DNA of 64,000 nucleotides, from sequence record KT919972.1, one strand, 5' to 3'. Below are positions 1,034 to 45,200 of the stretch, one piece after another; position 1 is the first letter of the stretch, and each line of letters starts with the position of its first letter. The notes under the pieces were generated by a model, which did not search any database, was not told the origin of the DNA, and saw nothing but the letters and a program-made list of their open reading frames with translations. The translations under genes were made by a program, and so were the position numbers.

Positions 1034-4000
1034 TGGCAAACGTATTACAAGCACCTCCAATTATGGGGGTGTCTATTGACAAATTGACGCGAAACTATGC
1101 GGAACTTTCATGGTCAACCGTGGGCGAAAACTTTCGCTACGAGATTCATGTTCGTTCGGCTGTTAGTGCAGAAATTCTTCTAACACAAAGTTTCACAGCG
1201 TTATACCCTAACCCGTTTACTAGCGAAACGAGGTTGTTTACGAATATTAACAGTTCTGTTCGTTATTATCAATGGAGAATTCGTTCTGTTTACAAGGGTT
1301 TTGAACCGAGTGAGTGGGTTACATCTGATATCGGGTATACGTCGGACACAAACGATTACGACATCACGACTCAAGACGAATTCATTCCCGCATCTTCATT
1401 CATTGAAGAGCGTTTGAATAACGACAACGACCAATACCTAAACAGTCGCAACAACCTGCAAGCTACCCTAGTACGACCAGGTTTTGAATTTGACCCTAAT
1501 ATGTTTAACGTCGAATCAGCGGCATATTGGTTTGTTACAAATCCCGGTTTTAGTGCAAATTATGGCAAAGTCCCAACTGTATGTCAGAACGTTGATCGCG
1601 TAATCCCTGTTGTTATAGACGATGTTATATATGCGTTCGAACGCTGGCAACAAGTTTGTAAAGTGTCTAACGACGGCGGTAGAACATGGCAGACATATAA
1701 AGCAACGAACTCAAGACTAGGGAACCCAGTCTATGATTGCATCTGTAAGCAGTCTAACGCATTTAGTTACCTACTAGGGTATGATTACCTTATTCAAGGC
1801 GTACAATCGAATGACGTTGATTACTCGCACGATAATGGGCTTGAATATTCACATGCATCGGTTGATTTGACGTTCGATAAACTAGACTTCGACTTAGGGT
1901 TTGGGTTCGATGTTGAGCGTTTCAAAGATTTGGCTATATTACCACCACAAGTGCGTAACAAAGCAGACGCTTTCGGCGTTGATGATGTAATGTCCGTTGT
2001 AACATACGCAAACACCTACGTGTGGCATAACAACAGAATCCCGCGAATTTTCGATAACGTATTATCAGAACTATATGGCGAACGTATTTTCGAAACAACG
2101 GGCGAATTAAACAACGAACCTGTTTACTTTGAAGATAAGATTGTGAAAAACGACGCGAGTCGACCTAATTTTGATGAAAACACAGCAGATGTGTGTGTTA
2201 AGAAAATTCAGTACTTCGACGACCCAGAGCAAGGTCTCGATTATCAAGACGGAAATATGTTCGCGCTAGTCATAGGTGAGTGGGAGCATGACGAGAACGG
2301 TAAACGAATCGGTACATCTGACCCGAATGAGATTCGCGGTGTTTATCGACTAAATCGCACAGCGACATTGAGAGATGGTATCGTTATTGGTTACACTGGC
2401 TTGACATGGGAACGTGTATACGGAAACATTGAAGAAGAACGCGAACTTCTAAACGAACGTTCAGTTATTTCACGTGACAACACTCATTTGATTGTAGGTC
2501 ACGATCTAACAAAGAACTACGGTGAAGAAGGCAACCCAGCTTACGACAATCGTCAAGAGTCTAGCGGTGCACCTGGTAATTTCCACTCAACTGCGGGTGA
2601 TAACTACGGTACAATAGATGACCCGTATCTAGTTTCAGACAACGATGAAGTTGACGAAGCTGTTCGTATGTTCACTAAACCGTTCTTTACAACATACGTT
2701 AAGCCGATGACACAGATTATCGCGACGAAAGACGGTGATGATTGGTACTACAAGCCGCAAGATTATTACGGATCCGCGCATTTCAACTGGATGCAGCGTG
2801 CTGAAACACGTGATTGGAAATCTTGGGCAAATGAAATCATGTACTACAAGAAAGAGTCAATTTTCAGAAGCGATTTTGAAGATCTAGACGAATATAAATG
2901 GAAAGAGACATTTGACGAAGGTGAATACAAACTGGAAGCTCCTAATCTATCGATTTTCGGGTTTAATGGTTATGCAGCAGGTGCGATCATTCACAGCGCG
3001 AACGACAACAAGGTAATAGGTTACTACAAGTTTCCATATCGCGTTGACATCACAGCGCCAATTCGCTGGTCGCCTGAGCGTCGTGTAATCACGGCTAGTT
3101 TGTCTAATTATTCTCCAGTAATTATCGAGCCGCCTGAAGAAGACCCAACAAGTATGCTCGACCCGACTCTGACACCATTGATTTACAAGATGATGCCAGA
3201 GAATTATCTCGATGCAGACGGGTTTTACAAGAGTTTTGCAAAGCACTACTTAGATTTCATCAGTAAAGGTGATGGTACGGCTTATAATAACGTGTATAAC
3301 TTGCTTAACAGCAAAAACCCACTTGACGACCATTACACTGAGTATCTACACAAATTAGTATACGAGCGAAATCGTATTCTAGAGCCAGAGAAACGTGATG
3401 CAGTTGTTAAATTTTTCTTGGCTCGACGTGCAGATTTTTACAGCACTAAAGGTATTTTAGACTCATACAAGTTCTTGTTCAAGTTACTGTACAACGAAGA
3501 TGTTGAAGTTGAAATAGAATCGCTTAACACGTTTGAATATTCAATCGTTGTTAACTCAAATGACGTAACCGATGATGTGGTAGGTCGTAGAATTTATTCA
3601 GAGACAGGCAACGCAGACGTGACATATGTTGACCGTCATTACATTGAAGGTAAACGTTACTGGAAATTGACTTTGAACAACTTAATCGGTGAGTTGAACA
3701 TCGGCGACACGTTAGAAATCGACGGTCTGGAATTCACTGCAACTGCGATTACTCGCGTACAAGGTGAACGAATCGACTACGATTCAAATGAATTTCTTGA
3801 TCGAAGCAAATCATACTACGTTATGAAGATTCGTTCTGAGATTCAGCTTAGTCAGTACAAAGATGATGTAATTCGATTTGTACACCCAATTGGGTTTGGG
3901 TTCTTAGGTATTACGTTGCTGACAGTATTGATCAATCACGGTATCTCAGTCAACCACCACGAAACGATTGTAGATTCATACAGATTGATTCGCTATGACA

Positions 4001-4530: not shown

Positions 4531-5554
4531 AGTGGCAAAAATTTACAGATCAACAATCACAACAGAGTATCGAGTTAATAACTTGATGAACTTCTACGAA
4601 AACGTAGGTGATGACGACGACAAGAACACAATTTACCTTATGTTCGGTCGTAACGAGCCTTGGTCAGACCGCGAAGATGAAATAAACTTCGCGCCGCCTT
4701 ACCCAAACGATAGCCCAGATGGGAAAGCAGACGTTTGGGCGCGTGCGCTAGGTCTGATTAAGATTCCAAAATCACAGCTTCGCCCTGTTATTCCTCGTAA
4801 GGACTGGGGCGACCCTGACCTAAACGATTCACTTCGTTTCACATTTGGCGATATCGTGACAGTTAACACGATGTCAATCAACAGTCACCCGAGCGCATTG
4901 AACGGCTATATGGTTTATCGATGTGTCGATATTCCAGAGACTGACCCGAATAACACAAACATTCGTGGTACATGTTCAATATCAACAGTCACAAATAAAA
5001 ATGATTGTGTAGCAGTTGGGGGTGAATGGAATGCACCGTCGTCACCCGGTAACCAAGAGAATATCCCTCATGGTACAGGGAATGCGATTGAAACAGGTGA
5101 CGGTTACGTATGGGAATATCTATACACTATCCCGCCGAATGAAGTCTTAACGAACGTGACAAAAGAATACATCGTTTGTCCGTTCCCTAACGACATCATC
5201 GAAAATCGAGTTGCGTGGGGTCTTGATCAGAATATCGTATTCAACGAGAACTACGACGAAACTATTTTCAACGTAGGTGCAGTTCAGTTACGATTCCGAG
5301 CTAAATTAGCTGGCTCTGACTTTATTCACTTATTCGGTCCCGGGAATAACGGGTATCGTCAGATTTCACTTGTTCAGAACCCATTATTGATTCGTCAAGA
5401 CGGTGATACCGAAGACACGAAAGCGACTGAAGTTAGATACGACCCGCATGAGATACAAGCAGGAACAGGTCAAATCATCTACATGGAAAACCGTCAGCCG
5501 ATTCGTAAAACATTAGATCAAGTAGAAGAATTCAATCTGATCTACAACTTCTAA
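4523..5554 (+). CDS. gp8: Baseplate wedge protein gp8
   Basis: IYRSTITTEYRVNNLMNFY, APPYPND, PRKDWGD, GDGYVWEYLYTIPP and YMENRQPIR motifs typical of gp8. Confidence 0.96.
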   Translation: MNKVAKIYRSTITTEYRVNNLMNFYENVGDDDDKNTIYLMFGRNEPWSDREDEINFAPPYPNDSPDGKADVWARALGLIKIPKSQLRPVIPRKDWGDPDLNDSLRFTFGDIVTVNTMSINSHPSALNGYMVYRCVDIPETDPNNTNIRGTCSISTVTNKNDCVAVGGEWNAPSSPGNQENIPHGTGNAIETGDGYVWEYLYTIPPNEVLTNVTKEYIVCPFPNDIIENRVAWGLDQNIVFNENYDETIFNVGAVQLRFRAKLAGSDFIHLFGPGNNGYRQISLVQNPLLIRQDGDTEDTKATEVRYDPHEIQAGTGQIIYMENRQPIRKTLDQVEEFNLIYNF

Positions 5555-11044: not shown

Positions 11045-12468
11045 GCAAAGGAACTCAAATTTTCAATCACGTGATTGACGATGCGGGTACAGTTACAGTT
11101 GAAGTCGAAGGTACTTCCTTTGATGGGCTTACTGGGGGTAATAACGATCTCCAAACGTGTCTTGAGCTTGTACAAGCTCATGCACTTCAACCATTACCTG
11201 ATTACCCTATAGCATCAACATCAGTCGCGGGCATTACATTGTTAAGTGATAATGCAGCAGTCGCAGATGAGCTTAATAACACAAGCGCGGTAACACCATC
11301 TGCATTAAATTATTGGATGGAAAATCACGCGACTGCAACAGAACTTCAATACGGTTTTGTGAAGCTGATTACAAACAGCACGATTGATAACATTGACCCG
11401 ACAGCCGCAGTAGAAGAAGCACAGAAACATGCATTCACGCTTAAAACATTGAACTACGCGTTGAATACTCGTTTCTATGCAACTGAATCTTCGCCGGGTG
11501 CTGTACGGCTAGCGACATATGCACAAGCAACGACAACAGGCACATTGTCTAATAGTGTGGCTATGACCCCACAGCGAGTTAAGGAAATGCTTGACGTGTG
11601 GGCGAATACTACCGCATCAGATGCTACAGAAACGACGAAAGGGTTGATTCGATTAGCAAATGCAACTGAAGTAAACAGCACATCAGCATCAGAAAACAAT
11701 CTAGCAATTTCACCGTATCGATTCAATGAACGCACAGCGACAACTACGAGAAAGGCAGGTTTCTATCTACCGAACTCAACAGTTGCAAATGCGCGTACAT
11801 CTAATGACCATGCAGTCACAGTCGGTACATTAGATTTATTCACTGCGACTAGCTCACGTGTCGGTGTTGCGAAAATTGCAAACAATCTAACAACAAACGA
11901 TGCGACTCAAGCACTAAGTGCGGCAATGGGTTATAAGTTGAATAATGAAAAGATTGGTGTTTCAGGCGGGACAGTAACTGGTACATTGAAAATCGACGAT
12001 GTTCAATCTGTAAGTGGTACTCAGTTAATGACAAATGGTCTGATTGAATCATCAGCTATGTTGAATATGTACCCTGTGGGTGCTATATACATGTCACTTG
12101 AATCTACATCACCAGCTACACTATTCGGTGGAACATGGTCTAGAATTGCAGAAGGTCGCGTGCTTGTATCTGAAGGTACACATGGTGGTAGAACATTCAA
12201 CGTAAGACAAACAGGTGGTGAATACGAAGTTATCTTAACTGAAGAAACAATGCCAACTCACAAACACGCAGGTTGGGGTGATCGTTGGACTTACGGTGGC
12301 AACGGGCTAGGGTTCGGAGTTGCATACGAGTATGGTAGAAGCAACCCAGGTTCAGGTCGTACTGATAACGACAACTACTTGTATTACTCATCACCAGAAG
12401 GTGGTGGTCAACCACATAATAACGTACAGCCGTACTATACTGTTTACATGTGGGAAAGAACTGCATAA
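11041..12468 (+). CDS. gp12: Short tail fibre gp12, paralogue B
   Basis: N-terminal NHVIDDAGTV, ATELQYGFVKL-type repeats, YPVGAIYMS collar, HKH motif and PHNNVQPYYTVYMWERTA end. Confidence 0.88.
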   Translation: MSKGTQIFNHVIDDAGTVTVEVEGTSFDGLTGGNNDLQTCLELVQAHALQPLPDYPIASTSVAGITLLSDNAAVADELNNTSAVTPSALNYWMENHATATELQYGFVKLITNSTIDNIDPTAAVEEAQKHAFTLKTLNYALNTRFYATESSPGAVRLATYAQATTTGTLSNSVAMTPQRVKEMLDVWANTTASDATETTKGLIRLANATEVNSTSASENNLAISPYRFNERTATTTRKAGFYLPNSTVANARTSNDHAVTVGTLDLFTATSSRVGVAKIANNLTTNDATQALSAAMGYKLNNEKIGVSGGTVTGTLKIDDVQSVSGTQLMTNGLIESSAMLNMYPVGAIYMSLESTSPATLFGGTWSRIAEGRVLVSEGTHGGRTFNVRQTGGEYEVILTEETMPTHKHAGWGDRWTYGGNGLGFGVAYEYGRSNPGSGRTDNDNYLYYSSPEGGGQPHNNVQPYYTVYMWERTA

Positions 12469-12508: not shown

Positions 12509-12536
12509 GGGTGAGATTGATTTCTCACCCTTTTTT
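12509..12536 (+). terminator. Intrinsic terminator after gp12B
   Basis: GGGTGAGA-ttgatt-TCTCACCC stem followed by T6. Confidence 0.85.
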
Positions 12537-12560
12537 GTATTAGCGCAGCGAAGAAATGGC

Positions 12561-12626
12561 AAGAGGCGGAAAAATTCCGTCTCATCTTAGTAGTATTAGT
12601 GGTTTTAGTGATATTAGAAGTATTAG
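12561..12626 (+). repeat. 66-bp non-coding element, copy A (inverted repeat of 39402-39467), with hairpin plus 9-bp-period TTAG array
   Basis: AAGAGGCGGAAAAATTCCGTCTCATCTTAGTAGTATTAGTGGTTTTAGTGATATTAGAAGTATTAG is the exact reverse complement of 39402-39467. Confidence 0.95.
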
Positions 12627-12718
12627 TATGATTAGTATTAAATACGTGTTTAATACCATGAATATGCTTGCTATTATTAACACATAAAGACATTCCCCTC
12701 TCTGTTTCTTTGTATTGC

Positions 12719-12726
12719 TATAAATA
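12719..12726 (+). promoter_or_regulatory. T4-type late promoter (wac)
   Basis: Consensus TATAAATA about 40 nt upstream of the wac start. Confidence 0.88.
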
Positions 12727-12766: not shown

Positions 12767-14449
12767 ATGACAATTCAAAAGCCTATCATTGAAGAGCTTA
12801 GATATGTAAATGGTCAACCAGATCCTTCTCAACGTCCCGATCAGACTCGAATCAATTGGGCTAAGAACGGTGAAAGCATCAACGGTGCTTCTGGTGACAC
12901 GACTTCAGACGGTGTATTAAACCGCGCAGGAGTACAGATTCAAGAAAACGTTCTAAACTCTCATTACAACACAAAAGCACAGCAAAGCGCAATTGAAGAA
13001 CTTGTTGATACTGTTAACGAACTGACAGGTGGCGGTGACGCTAACTTGGGTTCTCGTGTATCACAAAACGAGTTTGATATTGATGTACTTGAAGGTCAAA
13101 TGACTAACGTCATTGATGACATCGGTGTACCGAGTAGTGTTGACGTACTTGCAACAGGTCTGCATAAAGGCATCGAAGATGTTGAGGCAGATATTGGTGT
13201 TCGTAACAGCCTAGATATTCCAAACGAAGTTGAAAACAACGATACAGTTCGTAAAGACCTATATTTCATCAAGCGTCGTATTGGTAATGATCGTAACTAC
13301 GATGTCAATGGCAACCCATCGCCTAGTACAAACCCAACTGGTATGAAATATCAGATTGAAGATCTGTACAACAAAACAGCTACGATCAACGCTGAAATCG
13401 GCGAGAACGCAATCCCGCTTTCAATCAACGGTCGTTTATACGAACTAGAGCAAAACTCACAAGTTGGTTCTGTTGATCAGATTCGTGATGAACTAGGTGA
13501 AACGGCAGATGCTGACCCTGGTCGTCCAGTGTATCTTCGTCTTGATGATGCTGAAAGTTCTATTTCAGACAACGCATCAGATATTGCATTATTACAACAG
13601 GAAGTTGAAACGCCGACTACAGGTCTACTTGATCGCGTTAGCGCGAATGAAGTTACAATTGCAGATAATCAGTCACAAATTGGCTCCGTTACTAATTTAT
13701 TTATTGAAATGTCAACTGATATCGGTTCATACGCAGTAGATGACGTGTACTCGGGTAGCATGAAAGCTCGTCTATCGACGTTTAACGACGATATCAATAG
13801 CTTGTGGGGTCGTTTAGGGGCTACTGACGCAGAAACTGGCACAGTGTCTTACAGAGTGTCACAGCTTGAGTCTAGTCTAGGTGAGCGTACAAACCCCGTT
13901 GAATTTACTGCATGGTACACAATTCAAGAAAACCGTGGTTTGGTTGATTCTGCTCAAGCAGACGTTGACGGACTATTGGCTGTAGTTGGTCAGAGTGATA
14001 GCGAAGTGGGTACCTTACGTGCGCGTGTTCTAGAACTCGAATCACAGCTTGATCATGCATTGTTGACTTCTGATACCCCGAGCACTGTTGATCTTACAAC
14101 TACTCCGACAGATGTGTTTAGTTTATTCAACGTTGATACAGATGTAAGTGGCTACACGTATGCAGGGGGTGTATTGACACGTAACGGTCTATCACTGAGC
14201 AAAACGATGTCTATTCACTGGGTTGTTGTTTCACCGATAAACACTACAATCACGATTCGAATTGATTTCGACCATGATAACGGCACAAGCTCATCAATCG
14301 AGAAAACACGTACGCTTCGTGCAAACCAAGTTACTCCAGTTACAATCACTAACGTTGCGAATCTAGATGACTTGAGTGAGATTCGAGTATTGGCTAGCAC
14401 AGCGGCTAATGTTACTATCGACCATGAATCATTTGTACTAAAAGTATAA
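12767..14449 (+). CDS. wac: Fibritin (whisker/collar)
   Basis: N-terminal LRYVNGQPD...RINWAKNGE...DGVLNRAGVQIQEN as in T4 Wac, followed by a long segmented coiled coil. Start set to ATG 12767 after the AAGGG SD. Confidence 0.93.
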   Translation: MTIQKPIIEELRYVNGQPDPSQRPDQTRINWAKNGESINGASGDTTSDGVLNRAGVQIQENVLNSHYNTKAQQSAIEELVDTVNELTGGGDANLGSRVSQNEFDIDVLEGQMTNVIDDIGVPSSVDVLATGLHKGIEDVEADIGVRNSLDIPNEVENNDTVRKDLYFIKRRIGNDRNYDVNGNPSPSTNPTGMKYQIEDLYNKTATINAEIGENAIPLSINGRLYELEQNSQVGSVDQIRDELGETADADPGRPVYLRLDDAESSISDNASDIALLQQEVETPTTGLLDRVSANEVTIADNQSQIGSVTNLFIEMSTDIGSYAVDDVYSGSMKARLSTFNDDINSLWGRLGATDAETGTVSYRVSQLESSLGERTNPVEFTAWYTIQENRGLVDSAQADVDGLLAVVGQSDSEVGTLRARVLELESQLDHALLTSDTPSTVDLTTTPTDVFSLFNVDTDVSGYTYAGGVLTRNGLSLSKTMSIHWVVVSPINTTITIRIDFDHDNGTSSSIEKTRTLRANQVTPVTITNVANLDDLSEIRVLASTAANVTIDHESFVLKV

Positions 14450-28428: not shown

Positions 28429-29145
28429 ATGAAAGAACAAGAAAAGAATTACAACTACATTTACAAGATAACGAATAACATCAACGGTCATTACTATTAT
28501 GGTAAGCGTTCATGTGACTGTCTACCTGAAGAAGATTCATACATGGGTTCTGGTGTCGGGTTGCATCGTGCGTATGAAAAATACGGCATTGAAAACTTCA
28601 CGAAAGAAATCGTGTCTTTGCATGATACTCACTTCGAAGCGTATGAGGAAGAAGCTCGTATAGTTACAGAGAATATGATTAACAGCAAAGAATGTTATAA
28701 CATGAAAACGGGTGGACTATACAACTCATACACGTTCACAGACGATGTTAAGTCGAAAATATCAGATTCGATGAGACAATATGCGCTAGATAATGGTTAT
28801 GCTGAACGTATGCGAGAAGTTCAGAGATTGTCACAGTCTACTGTCTCAAAGATGAAACGCGCACTTGCTTGCAGTAAGCCGAGAAAATACACGAATGGTA
28901 AAGCAGATACGAAAGATAATCATACAGCGTATATGATATGGATTCTTAGAAATACAGAAACGGGCGAGGAAATTGTCAGCTATGACGGTCTAGGATCTTT
29001 ACCAATTAATAAAGGTACTGTGTTTAGTAGAATGCAACGAATGGGTATTAAGAAAGATAGAACTTCTCACATTGTTGTTTCGTGGGGTCAAGGGAAGAAC
29101 AAGCATATTGAAGTTGAAAGAATGTCAGCGGTATGTTGGCTTTAA
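28429..29145 (+). mobile_element. Free-standing GIY-YIG homing endonuclease (Seg family, SegD-like position)
   Basis: YIYKITNNINGHYYYGKR...YMGSG..L.RAYEKYGIENFTKEI...EE...YNMKTGG. Start ATG 28429 follows GGAG. Confidence 0.9.
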
Positions 29146-38933: not shown

Positions 38934-39343
38934 ACTATACCACTCTCAATTTTTCTGTTGTCAATAATGTGTTTGATTGTGAAGCCCATTTGACTAATGC
39001 CTTTCAAAGCTTCTTCGATGAATGATAACACATCTTTCATGTGTTGAAAAGTAGCAATTGCACGTTGAAGATATTCATCACCCGCAAGAGCATATTTCAT
39101 TTCACTCTTTTCTACGATGAAATCACAAACTTCATCGTCATGTTTGCCGCTATAAAAGAGCCAGCGGTCTTTTCTCACAGCTTCCATTTTCATTTCAGCT
39201 TTGATAAGTAGTTGTCTTGCATCGGCTCGGTATGCAAGCCACTTCGCATGAAGAACGGGAATTCGAATAGCTGCTGTTTCTAAAGCAGTTGTGTCAATTT
39301 TCACGTCTTCGTGATATTCAATTTTTAAATCTTGTAGCTTCAT
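38930..39343 (-). CDS. uvsY: UvsY recombination mediator
   Basis: DVKIDTTALE....IPVLHAKWL...RWLFYSGK...KGISQMGFTIKHIID.RK.ESG. Confidence 0.95.
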   Translation of the reverse strand: MKLQDLKIEYHEDVKIDTTALETAAIRIPVLHAKWLAYRADARQLLIKAEMKMEAVRKDRWLFYSGKHDDEVCDFIVEKSEMKYALAGDEYLQRAIATFQHMKDVLSFIEEALKGISQMGFTIKHIIDNRKIESGIV

Positions 39344-39401
39344 AATAACCTCGCGTCATCAAGTATACATTTCATCATTGGTTGCTTAAACACTAATCCC
39401 T

Positions 39402-39467
39402 CTAATACTTCTAATATCACTAAAACCACTAATACTACTAAGATGAGACGGAATTTTTCCGCCTCTT
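39402..39467 (-). repeat. 66-bp non-coding element, copy B (inverted repeat of 12561-12626)
   Basis: Exact reverse complement of copy A. CTAA at 39393, 39402, 39411, 39420, 39429 and 39438. Confidence 0.95.
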
Positions 39468-39488
39468 ACCGTTTTTCGCTTCGCGTAT

Positions 39489-39508
39489 AAAAAAAGCCCC
39501 GAAGGGCT
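39489..39508 (-). terminator. Intrinsic terminator after gene 35
   Basis: Minus strand AGCCC-TTCG-GGGCT followed by T7. Confidence 0.9.
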
Positions 39509-39511
39509 CTT

Positions 39512-42213: not shown

Positions 42214-45200
42214 TTATATAGCGTGTCCGTACGTAAACTCCAACACGCCTTGATTATTAGTTGACATTCTTACAGAACCAACTTGAATGTAGTCTCTGTA
42301 TTTAACGCTCTCACCTGTACCACCGTCTGGCGTGAACAAGTCGATACGCTCAGATAGAGTCTTACCAGCACCAGCCGATAGAGCTTGGTGTGGGTCTGAA
42401 GCATTCACTGGGTCTGCTGTACGCACGTCACTTGTTACTTGTACAATACCTGAATTCGTGCGGCTTGATTTGCGCAAACGATCATTGTTAATTGTACCAG
42501 TTGTGATGTTCTCACCTGAGTGAGCGTGACTATAATCGTTAACTTGAATGTTTGAAGTAACGTTTCCGCTACCATCTAACGTAAAGTTACCGGACAAGTC
42601 GCCAGTGAACGTCACTGTACGCGCTGTAACCCACTTCTCAGAAGCTTTAGCCACGTTGTTAATACCCAAGTACTTGCTACGAAGTGAACCTGTTGCAGGG
42701 CTTGAATAAGTCCCGTATGTTGCATCAACGTTTGCGCTTGCTTCGTTTTCAGTGATACTTGAACCTGCTGTTATCGTGCTGTCAGTTGTCAATGCACCGT
42801 AAACGTTAGTATTACCGTTATTAGCTACTCTAAGCAACCAGTTGTCAACCCCATCAGTAAACCCGACCTTGCCAGACTGGTAGTAAAGCTCAAGCGTGCT
42901 GTTTGCATCAGTCGTATCAGTGAATTCGATTCGAGGGTTTGCGCCCTGAATTTTAATTTCATTCTCTGTGAATGTGTAAACACCTGAGATAGTATCTGAA
43001 ACGTCACTGCGTGCAAATTGTGTACTGTTCAAGCCATCTAGTAATTCTGAGTCATCAGCTTTAGCGTTTAATGGCAAGTAGTTACGCAATGCATAGTGTA
43101 ACCCGTAAGGTGATACTGCATATGGAACGCGCAAGTACGAAGTATATGCTTGCGTTGAACCGTCTGTGCTGTTACCTACGAACGTTTCTGCTGGCGTTGC
43201 AATTTGTACATTACCGTATCGAGCTTCATTTGCACGTGAACTATCAGAGTATCTAGTCCAGTGAAGCAAATCACTAGGGGTAACAACAATTTCAGTACTT
43301 GCCGTAGCCGATTCTACTTCAGCTTGAGTTGCAAGACGTACAATACCAGTTTGTGTTTCTGTAGCACGACGCGCATTTAACTTCTGTGGTGTGATTATTA
43401 CATCATCAAGCGCACCAGTTTGAGCATTCGCTTCTGCTTGAGTCGCAACTTGTAGTGTACCACGTTGTGTTTCAGTCGCTGACGCGATGCTGAATGTAAC
43501 GTCGCCCCATACTGTACCGGTATGCGATAGACCATCTGTTCCTGCTGTCACGAAATGATCACGGTCAAGCCATGTCTTCAGTTTAAGTGGTGAAACAATA
43601 CGAGTATCGTCTGTACCTGAGTCAACTTCAGTTTGGGTTGCGATTTCAGCAACACCACGACGTGATTCAGTTGCTGTTCTGCTATTCAACGTTTCTGGTG
43701 TGATGAAGACTGTTGTCCACGATTCACCAGTTCCTGTTGTTGCATTTGCTTCAGACTGTGTAGCAGAACGAGCAATACCACGAACCGTTGAGCTTGCTTT
43801 CCACGCTGCTAATTTCTTAGGCGTGATGATCGCGTTATCAACTGTTGAGTCGTTGATGCGAAGTTCACTACTCTTAGCAACCCATAATGTACCAGGTTGA
43901 TTCTCTGTAGCGCGATACTCATCAAGCATTTTAGGCGTTACGATACGCAGATGATCAGTTTTATCATATACTGTATTGTCAATACCATTTACTGAACGGT
44001 CTGAACGCATATTCGCTGTTGATGTAACAATACCACCAGCATTGATGTTGTTCGACGCTTCGACAAGTTTTGCAACACCTGTTAGATCTTCTTCAGCTTG
44101 TGCAGCGTGGAATTTCATCGGTGTTAGAACTTGAATATCGTTAGTTGTGCTTCGCGTCTCGTTTTGAGTTGCGATTTCAACTACACCGCGACGTGTTTCA
44201 GTTGCTGTACGCGCATTCAAGCTACGTGGTGTTATGAACAGGTCATGTCTGAAGTTTGTATCTGGGTAACGAACAAACGTGCCAGAACGCGATTCTTCAA
44301 GTGCTTCATCAGTTCCAAGTGTAGCAACACGAGCCATACCAACTTGCTGTTCACCTGCACGACGAGCGTCAAGCGTCTCTACCGTGATTACGTGGTCTTT
44401 CAGTGGGTTTTGATCAGCCCAAGGGTCTGCTGCATCTTCAGGGTGCGCATATTCAATCCCGTGTGCTAGAGCTTCCGTTGGGTCAGCTAATGGCACGATA
44501 CCCGGGCGTTTACGGTATAGTTCATCAGCGATATCGATACGAGTCGCGATGTTACCGAACGACCATACTTTACGACTCGCGTCGTAGTATAGAACTAGTG
44601 AATAACCGCTGTCATAATCACTAATTTCGAATGATTCAACGAAGAATGGAACGAAATCAACGTAATGACGGTATTTTTGATAACGATATGTTTCAAAGTC
44701 CAAGAATACTTTGTATTCATCGGGACCGTGACCTGGGTCATCATCACCGAAATTCGGGTGAACTTGAATCGTTACTTTCTTATGAGCTGTTTTGTTGTGT
44801 GAGATCTCAATCCAGTCACCATCGGCTGGTTTTTCTGGTAGTGTGATCGTCATTGCAGGAACAGCATCTGCGATTTCGATAGCGTAACGAGAACGAGGCT
44901 TCAATTCAACCGCGCTTGAATCCCCGACATAGTTCCATAAATGCGGGTTGTTCGCGATTGTGATTACCCATACGCCAGTACCGTTATCATCGATAAATGT
45001 GATATCAGCGCCGCCGATAGTATCAAGACTGATAACAGAACTACGTTCGCCTGAAATAGGGTCTTGAATAACCTGACCCGTAGCAGTCGGGTTCACACCG
45101 ATTTGAATCGACGTTTGATTCTCAAGATACGCAACATCTTTAAGATGAATTGTATCGCCCACGTTCGGGTTCAGTGGTACAGAAATTGCAATTTTCTTAA

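Follow-up and report, generated by a model that had tools for sequence, protein, structure and literature searches.

Bacteriophage T4 has at least five dispersed origins of replication, among them oriE, in which evenly spaced direct repeats accompany an early promoter, and oriF, which lies at the uvsY promoter (PMC3016281). No recognisable motif is common to these origins, and what the repeats of oriE do is still undefined (PMC3016281). Elsewhere, initiation signals are read on single-stranded DNA (ssDNA): hairpins with purine triloops mark the G4 origin, ssiA of RSF1010 and the N4 promoters (PMC13037366), and the DnaA-trio is an ssDNA track with the consensus 5'-TAG-3' on which an oligomer takes 3 nucleotides (nt) per subunit (PMC8287927). 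Here we describe a module of about 100 bases, comprising a hairpin and an array of TTAG motifs at an exact 9-nt period, in phi-Grn1, a T4-like Vibrio myovirus of the KVP40 group (Straboviridae, Schizotequatrovirus) with a genome of 248.6 kb. The stretch analysed (the window) consists of 64,000 nt of record KT919972.1; window positions, used throughout unless the record is named, equal record positions minus 62000. By analogy with the multiple origins of T4, the six modules of this genome may be ssDNA replication-initiation or primosome-loading signals of KVP40-type phages, a reading that we favour tentatively.

Like the T4 origins, the modules belong to phages of the same superfamily, stand at several sites round the genome, span about 100 bp, are A+T-rich and promoter-adjacent and are polar with respect to transcription, and one of them sits, as oriF does, at the uvsY promoter (PMC3016281). 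They differ from those origins in having a unit of 9 nt with an invariant TTAG rather than one of 12 nt. The module is not described in the papers on the PeSL intergenic cassettes, the phi-Grn1 genome paper, the T4 origin review or Rfam, a scope outside which the original KVP40 genome paper (PMC180978) falls.

Six copies at conserved gene junctions

A first-pass annotation of the window had reported a perfect 66-bp inverted repeat with a hairpin and six TTAG motifs, explained by no gene. Positions 12561-12626 are indeed the reverse complement of 39402-39467, 66 nt being the maximal exact match, and the imperfectly matching flanks give a wider repeat of 89 nt (12554-12642 against 39386-39474) at 92% identity. 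In the plus-strand copy (copy A) the TTAG motifs start at 12587, 12596, 12605, 12614, 12623 and 12632, and in the minus-strand copy (copy B) at 39441, 39432, 39423, 39414, 39405 and 39396, the period being exactly 9 nt. Four TTAG motifs at 9-nt steps were matched six times in the window, against 0.00 expected from 100 shuffles. The same hairpin, GAGGCGGAA-AAA-TTCCGTCTC, is present at 12563-12583 and 39465-39445, while the spacer between the fifth and sixth TTAG differs (TATGA in copy A, AGGGA in copy B). Both copies share the orientation of local transcription, copy A lying after gp12 and copy B after gp35.

These two copies are not the full family. A sensitive search over the whole phi-Grn1 genome found six modules, two of them in the window; all are intergenic and oriented with their flanking genes, four on the plus strand and two on the minus strand. 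Along the record they lie at 48.2 kb (minus strand; locus c5) between gp3 and gene 1, which encodes a deoxynucleoside monophosphate (dNMP) kinase; at 74.5 kb (plus; c1, copy A) between gp12 and wac, the fibritin gene; at 101.4 kb (minus; c2, copy B) between gp35 and uvsY; at 143.4 kb (plus; c3) between an open reading frame (ORF) and a glutaredoxin-like ORF, gp24 and gp55; at 188.1 kb (plus; c6) between two ORFs about 2.5 kb upstream of rIIA; and at 244.2 kb (plus; c4) between an ORF and a lipoprotein-like ORF.

Four genomes were compared locus by locus: phi-Grn1, VH7D, KVP40 and nt-1, the last from another genus, Mylasvirus. A profile search of nt-1 returned exactly six copies at the same six gene junctions, and KVP40 and VH7D, searched in IMG/VR, have six loci each at the same intergenic sites as phi-Grn1. 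In wider records BLAST gave about six places per genome in at least 50 KVP40-type records and no convincing match outside records of that type; the smaller genome F86 shows four places. A family that recurs at the same loci in at least 50 independent genomes rules out an assembly artefact. It also led us to set aside, as the main explanation, a two-copy inverted repeat serving recombination or inversion, since there are six copies, split four and two between the strands, each following the local gene direction. An origin of the element in the host was likewise rejected, as a pattern scan of bacterial genomes (one per species) gave two matches and a BLAST search of plasmids one, all of them chance.

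Variants of the module were also encountered. In phage 1.081.O (MG592456.1) the whole module stands in tandem at the gp3/P-loop NTPase junction (c5), 164 bp apart, with seven and then six TTAG units. Three metagenomic contigs contribute further variants; two of these, Ga0207798_100183 (4551-4686) and Ga0207798_100154 (3586-3721), hold a c4-type variant with an extra GTGCC-GAA-GGCAC hairpin after the box described below, and in one of the two the 5' arm of the main hairpin is unpaired (GGCTCAA versus TTCCGC). A TTAG-like array in IMGVR_UViG_3300030114_000018, a very A+T-rich plasmid-like viral contig, was discarded as a probable chance resemblance, having no hairpin and one 7-nt step; it includes ATCTTAGTAGAATTAGTAATATTAG and holds five TTAG (13437-13481), some 1.2 kb downstream of a replication-initiator homologue, and the TubZ/PhuZ-like gene of the contig is some 4.2 kb away.

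Round the circular map of phi-Grn1 the gaps between modules are 26.3, 26.9, 42.0, 44.7, 56.1 and 52.6 kb. The copies are over-dispersed: as calculated from their positions, random placement would leave all six gaps at 26 kb or more with a probability of about 0.007.

A hairpin and a phased track on one strand

The anatomy of the module was read from an alignment (A1) of 30 copies, in which five aligned units per copy provide 150 units and 750 spacer bases. In order, the module comprises an optional box, AGCGAAGCG, a hairpin of 6-9 bp, the trinucleotide ATC and five to seven units of the form TTAG-D-R-N-W-W. The box (A1 columns 26-35), a conserved upstream element that goes beyond the first description, contains GCGAAGC in its consensus; it is degenerate in copy A (AGCGAAG, 12547-12553, plus strand) and exact in copy B (39478-39484, minus strand). 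Most copies have it, but none of the four genomes does at c3, nor do KVP40 and nt-1 at c6, and it is thus accessory. At c4 and c6 it falls within the last codons of the upstream ORF, and the spacer that separates it from the hairpin varies freely in length. GCGAAGC occurs 45 times in the phi-Grn1 genome, on both strands, against about 18 expected from base composition, and was therefore rejected as a unique marker; in the long plus-strand gene block it is found mostly on the coding strand, where it may reflect Ser-Glu-Ala-type codon strings.

The hairpin of the window copies (9+3+9) is predicted under both RNA and DNA parameters, and is predicted to be weaker on the bottom strand than on the top strand. 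A 6-bp core is kept in the 30 copies, the loop and the top two A-T pairs being invariant; the loops are AAA or AAAAU, with no leading G. Stem cells are paired in 89.6% of cases, compared with 36-54% when the partners are slid. Two stem pairs are exchanged on both sides together (GG/CC to CC/GG) at c5 in three genomes and at c6 in two. This swap probably arose once, as a compensatory change, and was then copied by gene conversion, and for that reason the evidence for pairing is good but thin. A further pair is a G.U wobble in 16 copies and a G-C pair in 11, and there are 20 cells of the G.T type against four of the A.C type.

The ATC that follows (12584-12586 in copy A, 39442-39444 in copy B) is invariant in 30 of 30 copies and sets the register between hairpin and array. 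The array itself (12587-12640, plus strand, with no C on this strand; 39393-39441, minus strand) is governed by strict rules. All 150 units have TTAG at positions 1-4 and a purine at position 6; T, T and A predominate at positions 5, 8 and 9, respectively. Of the 750 spacer bases, 12 (1.6%) are C, compared with 23% for G in the spacers and 19.6% for C in the genome. At positions 5 and 8 a change of T to C, normally the commonest substitution, is never seen, whereas T to A is frequent. The five aligned units contain no spacer indel in any of the 30 copies, and length varies by gain or loss of whole units. Read in phase, the array is approximately (T-purine-purine)n; TAG accounts for 195 of 450 triplets (43%), and the first four triplets are TAG, TAG, WAT and TAG in all 30 copies. 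The proposal that spacing is under selection is borne out, in that the TTAG register is invariant, and conserved at the same loci in the four genomes, while the spacers vary. Indeed, the units within one array all differ in their spacers, which excludes an ordinary 9-bp slippage microsatellite. Two generic TTAG-N5 scans of IMG/VR returned, among the matches listed, perfect whole-unit 9-bp microsatellites, mostly in giant-virus bins.

With G.U pairs allowed, the array unit is quasi-palindromic, and it is so only in the RNA alphabet (83.5% of cells paired versus 34-65% for slid controls). A long RNA fold-back of the array was nevertheless rejected: it would consist of A-U and G.U pairs only, shows no covariation beyond column composition, lies outside the consensus fold and has a weak and variable energy (-3.5 to -14.8 kcal/mol).

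That no gene accounts for the element, as had been said of the two copies, holds for the family. It could be argued that a small protein is encoded across the module, as two sense frames are open through the array, copy A contains a 43-codon ORF (12556-12687) and hypothetical proteins are annotated there in some records. The start codon, however, is not kept between orthologues (ATG at c1 of phi-Grn1, none at c1 of KVP40 nor at c2), the would-be third positions are invariant, with no synonymous variation in 150 units, and at c4 and c6 the same sequence lies partly within the end of another ORF. A coding function was therefore rejected and has, in our judgement, next to no chance of being correct. 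Short ORFs that run through the array or start just after it are annotated as hypothetical in the window (12556-12687, plus strand), in F86 (VPHF86_0343) and in nt-1 (ORF204); those that span the array are probably erroneous calls to which the module gave rise.

Identity of the core is 87.7% between orthologues, 85.0% between paralogues of one genome and 84.3% when non-orthologous copies from different genomes are compared, and hairpin variants are spread over the loci against strict orthology, which implies gene conversion. Together with the tandem duplication in one phage, this would fit a recombination cassette or selfish repeat of no dedicated function, carried as a passenger of the PeSL cassettes and kept similar through gene conversion. 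The PeSLs described by Arbiol, Comeau and Krisch occupy the same type of intergenic space, from terminator to early promoter, in the same phages, nt-1 and KVP40 (PMC4122927). They are themselves, however, promoter, Shine-Dalgarno sequence and terminator, and they are numerous and clustered in hyperplastic regions (PMC4122927), whereas the module is a distinct insert between terminator and promoter, in six fixed copies that lie mostly in conserved core regions. Its conserved unit holds no promoter, Shine-Dalgarno sequence with start codon or terminator, these being variable neighbours that are absent at some loci, and a TTAG array is not part of the PeSL description. Moreover, the six positions are kept across two genera though the flanking intergenic DNA diverges, the downstream flanks being much less conserved at most loci; the copy number is fixed at six, with no spread; and the invariant TTAG, the exclusion of indels and the compensatory changes indicate purifying selection on specific features rather than drift. 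A functionless passenger is accordingly very improbable. The copies are instead held to one consensus by selection while also exchanging sequence.

These constraints are not shared equally by the two strands. All six copies are co-oriented with transcription, G.T wobble is conserved, and C is excluded while G is tolerated, observations that argue for reading of the sense strand in single-stranded form. A G.T wobble on the top strand is an A.C mismatch on the bottom strand, so the constraint is strand-specific, and a reader of duplex DNA alone would not be expected to impose such an asymmetry. The module would then act in one of two forms, RNA of the sense strand or ssDNA of the top strand, and the strictness of the 9-nt register suggests an oligomer of fixed step that is nucleated at the hairpin. 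What is common to the two possibilities, a strand-specific hairpin and phased track that bind an oligomer on a single strand, is in our view probably correct.

Transcriptional setting and the nature of a proposed reader

At c1, c2, c3 and c5 the module lies a few bases past a strong intrinsic terminator and ahead of the next sigma-70/T4-early-like promoter, and is thus outside the main transcripts there. Terminators precede both window copies, as the first-pass annotation had noted. That of the upstream gene of copy A, a gp12-type short tail fibre paralogue whose coding sequence ends at 12468, has an 8-bp G+C stem (12509-12530, plus strand) and a T run that takes it to 12536; that after gp35, the long tail fibre hinge connector gene, lies at 39489-39510 on the minus strand (stem AGCCC-TTCG-GGGCT, then T7) and was read directly, the tool having listed only the opposite-strand reading of the same stem. 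Both stand outside the module. Candidate promoters follow five of the six loci at about 0 to 30 bp between array and -35 element, which the array abuts or overlaps at c2 and c3. No copy has its own promoter, and none lies in the interval from the upstream terminator to the module.

At c4 no terminator separates the cistrons. The hairpin directly adjoins the stop codon of the upstream ORF, and the following gene draws its Shine-Dalgarno sequence and start codon from the last units of the array in phi-Grn1, KVP40, nt-1 and two metagenomic contigs. At c6, the one locus of six where a terminator follows the array, a strong two-tier intrinsic terminator (z about -5) starts at the last AG of the sixth TTAG. 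Its 3' half contains the -35 element, TTGACA, of the next promoter (record position about 188.15-188.2 kb in phi-Grn1; also in KVP40 and nt-1), and a compensatory change from G-C to A-U distinguishes phi-Grn1 from KVP40 and nt-1. The c4 module is certainly intercistronic and the c6 module certainly part of a 3' untranslated region.

A site between transcription units, present in small copy number and touching the -35 element at c2 and c3, could serve as an operator, roadblock or insulator on double-stranded DNA. A phage DNA-binding protein, for example of the ribbon-helix-helix type, would coat the direct repeats and either cover the neighbouring early promoter or stop RNA polymerase that reads through, the latter depending on orientation. 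Mycobacteriophage stoperators and the omega and ParG arrays, with short boxes at fixed spacing, are systems of this kind, and an invariant box of 4-6 bp with rigid spacing and variable spacers agrees with it. The compensatory change and wobble in the hairpin and the preference for G over C would, however, go unexplained, as would the common orientation of all six copies unless the block were polar, and both the variable distance to the -35 element and the locus that lacks a promoter count against such a function, which we consider unlikely. The suggestion of an iteron-like array made in the first-pass annotation survives in part. Direct repeats at fixed spacing, as found in iteron origins, are present (five to seven units at exactly 9 nt in 30 copies), and a phased protein-binding array beside a hairpin is the most economical reading; a plain double-stranded iteron, on the other hand, is disfavoured by the strand-specific signals.

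On RNA, the hairpin of a polycistronic or read-through sense transcript could nucleate an oligomeric RNA-binding protein that reads the phased UUAG/UAG track, either in the manner of TRAP or HutP or by cooperative spreading as at the T4 gene 32 operator, and that controls translation, decay or termination at the junctions between transcription units. A variant of this idea is a nut-like antitermination site built of box, hairpin and GU-rich track. Such a cis-acting RNA element is possible, and nearly as likely as a signal on ssDNA. It would accommodate the co-orientation of all six copies, the retention of G.U wobble and the exclusion of C, which leave the track free of G-C structure, and a unit that is quasi-palindromic in the RNA alphabet alone. 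It would also suit c4, where the module lies between two cistrons without a terminator and its last units provide a ribosome-binding site and start, and c6, where the array runs into a strong terminator with a compensatory change. RNase E prefers RN|WUU, to which each unit boundary would conform; this enzyme, however, needs neither A3 and G4, both of which are invariant, nor a strict register of 9 nt. As in the TRAP, HutP and gene 32 operators, UAG motifs recur at a fixed step in an unstructured, strand-specific track beside a structured nucleation element, and at one locus the track ends on a ribosome-binding site.

Several observations oppose an RNA element. Four of the six loci lie past strong terminators and before the next promoter, so that the major transcripts would lack the module. 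TRAP and HutP read NAG motifs with spacers of 2-4 nt, a spacing of 5-7 nt, in contrast with the UAG, 6-nt spacers and period of 9 found here, where most copies are outside the main transcripts; we know of no TRAP or HutP homologue in these phages or their hosts, nor of any candidate RNA-binding protein. Lambdoid nut sites combine a boxB with a GNRA-like pentaloop and a boxA of the CGCTCTT type downstream of a promoter, whereas the module has an AAA or AAAAU loop, the box AGCGAAGCG and, in four of six copies, a position upstream of the nearest promoter. The whole window gave no Rfam match at the gathering threshold, the best permissive matches (E 0.46 or worse) being to unrelated eukaryotic small nucleolar RNAs, and the weak, variable fold-back lacks covariation. 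The hairpins have purine triloops where the terminators of this genome mostly have tetraloops, and the even spacing of the copies would be unexplained. The free-standing structured small RNA that the first pass had offered as an alternative fares worse: with no promoter of its own, a terminator after the array at one of six loci, no Rfam match and no conserved structure in the array, it is unsupported.

On ssDNA, the A+T-rich array would be unwound by nearby transcription, an R-loop or a recombination intermediate, whereupon the top strand of the module could fold its hairpin or hairpins and expose the phased track. The small G+C hairpin with its invariant A-rich top would be the nucleation site, and the A/T/G-only track would offer TTAG every 9 nt, that is, at every third T-purine-purine triplet, to an oligomer of fixed step, perhaps of the helicase, primase or initiator type. 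The size of the family, its synteny, orientation, anatomy and conservation pattern, the strand asymmetry and the lack of coding are observed; that DNA and not RNA is the single-stranded molecule, that it is bound by an oligomeric protein and that replication is thereby initiated are what we infer. In this specific form, in which the modules of KVP40-type phages serve as origins or load helicase or primase, and an oligomer reads their ssDNA in steps of 9 nt, or three triplets, the proposal is possible but doubtful.

Several lines of evidence point in this direction. An origin-like role is suggested by the six copies at the same loci across two genera and in about six places in at least 50 records, by their over-dispersion, by the top-strand constraints combined with a strict register, and by an A+T-rich array of about 54 bp that resembles the T4 unwinding elements and at c2 abuts the uvsY promoter. 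The four loci outside the main transcripts favour DNA over RNA. The d(GCGAAGC) mini-hairpin of the box and the CCGAAGG hairpin of a metagenomic variant suggest an ssDNA initiation signal, and the 43% of in-phase triplets that are TAG, the DnaA-trio consensus, also argue for ssDNA. The G4 origin, ssiA and ssiB of RSF1010 and the N4 virion-polymerase promoters similarly have short G+C stems, three-purine loops and the exact d(GCGAAGC) (PMC13037366). They too are confined to one particular strand, beside unstructured sequence at which synthesis could begin, and the module provides a top-strand hairpin predicted with DNA parameters, a wobble pattern that favours that strand and the GCGAAGC box. 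They have, however, no phased repeat array. KVP40-type phages, moreover, possess a T4-type primase-helicase, and in them the box is dispensable at one locus and its GCGAAGC common in the genome. The basal unwinding system of bacterial origins, where DnaA boxes and a short G+C gap precede the DnaA-trios, offers another parallel, in which a structured G+C element is followed, after a gap of a few bases, by a one-strand trinucleotide track containing TAG; the module has at least three consecutive NAN trinucleotides on one strand (TAG, TAG, WAT, TAG). It differs in being intergenic in a phage rather than chromosomal and in conserving every third triplet, with a period of 9 rather than 3, and no DnaA box is in reach.

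It should be emphasized that a number of observations weigh against replication initiation on ssDNA. No initiator gene is recognisable in the annotations beside any of the six loci, and no TTATCCACA-like site (up to two mismatches) lies within about 16 bp upstream of the track at any of them; a DnaA-box origin was rejected on this ground. The T4 origins have no common motif, whereas one module is repeated six times here. The R-loop origins of T4, oriF and oriG, need a promoter upstream of the unwinding element; the array is A+T-rich as theirs is, but no promoter directly upstream transcribes into it, and the promoters that are present lie downstream and fire away from it. The c4 array carries a Shine-Dalgarno sequence and start codon and the c6 array is fused to an intrinsic terminator, so that at least two copies are in mRNA. 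An element read on RNA explains the same strand-specific signals, the box is not diagnostic given its 45 genomic matches to GCGAAGC and its absence at c3, and the even spacing could stem from recombinational loss of closely spaced direct repeats. The literature searched contained no RNA-seq or origin-mapping data for these phages. Thus, the module resembles several known kinds of signal but fails a defining feature of each family tested, and belongs to none of them.

Neighbouring features and implications

Candidate promoters lie close downstream of both window copies, as neighbours rather than parts of the module. Copy A is followed on the plus strand by a candidate sigma-70/T4-early-like promoter, GTTTAA-N18-TATTAT (12648-12677; read by the tool as TTAATA-N16-TATTAT), and then, upstream of wac, by TATAAATA (12719-12726, direct reading), which we take to be a T4-type late promoter motif. 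The early-like candidate beside copy B, GTTTAA-N18-TATACT (39362-39391, minus strand), begins 1 nt past the sixth TTAG, upstream of uvsY (ATG at 39343); it was read directly, being unlisted by the consensus scan, and is kept in KVP40 and nt-1 as GTTTAC or GTTTAT followed by TATACT.

Other features of the genome were recorded in passing. The gp34 gene for the proximal subunit of the long tail fibre contains a 76-nt direct repeat (43632-43707 and 44163-44238; 79% identity, 531 nt apart), which is presumably a coding repeat internal to the gene. Directly after the major capsid gene comes a seg-like GIY-YIG homing endonuclease gene (28429-29145; record 90429-91145), and a tRNA nucleotidyltransferase gene comes next on the opposite strand. 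At 178.5-183.9 kb and 11.6-12.5 kb of the record, phi-Grn1 has queuosine/7-deazaguanine precursor genes (FolE, QueD-like, QueC, QueE and QueF-like), with an unannotated ORF of 458 amino acids between FolE and QueF. The genome also encodes about 30 tRNA genes.

The module explains spurious hypothetical-protein calls in several deposited genomes. Its wider interest lies in the fact that T4-type phages serve as a reference system in the study of replication, recombination and gene timing, and that its rules (a hairpin joined by a constant linker to TTAG motifs at 9-nt steps, with C excluded and one orientation only) offer a testable handle on one of two questions: how a large T4-like genome marks its initiation sites, or how such a genome uses a phased single-strand-binding protein to insulate neighbouring transcription units or to control them. 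If the modules do prove to be origins, they would provide the first origin motif defined by sequence that members of the T4 superfamily share.

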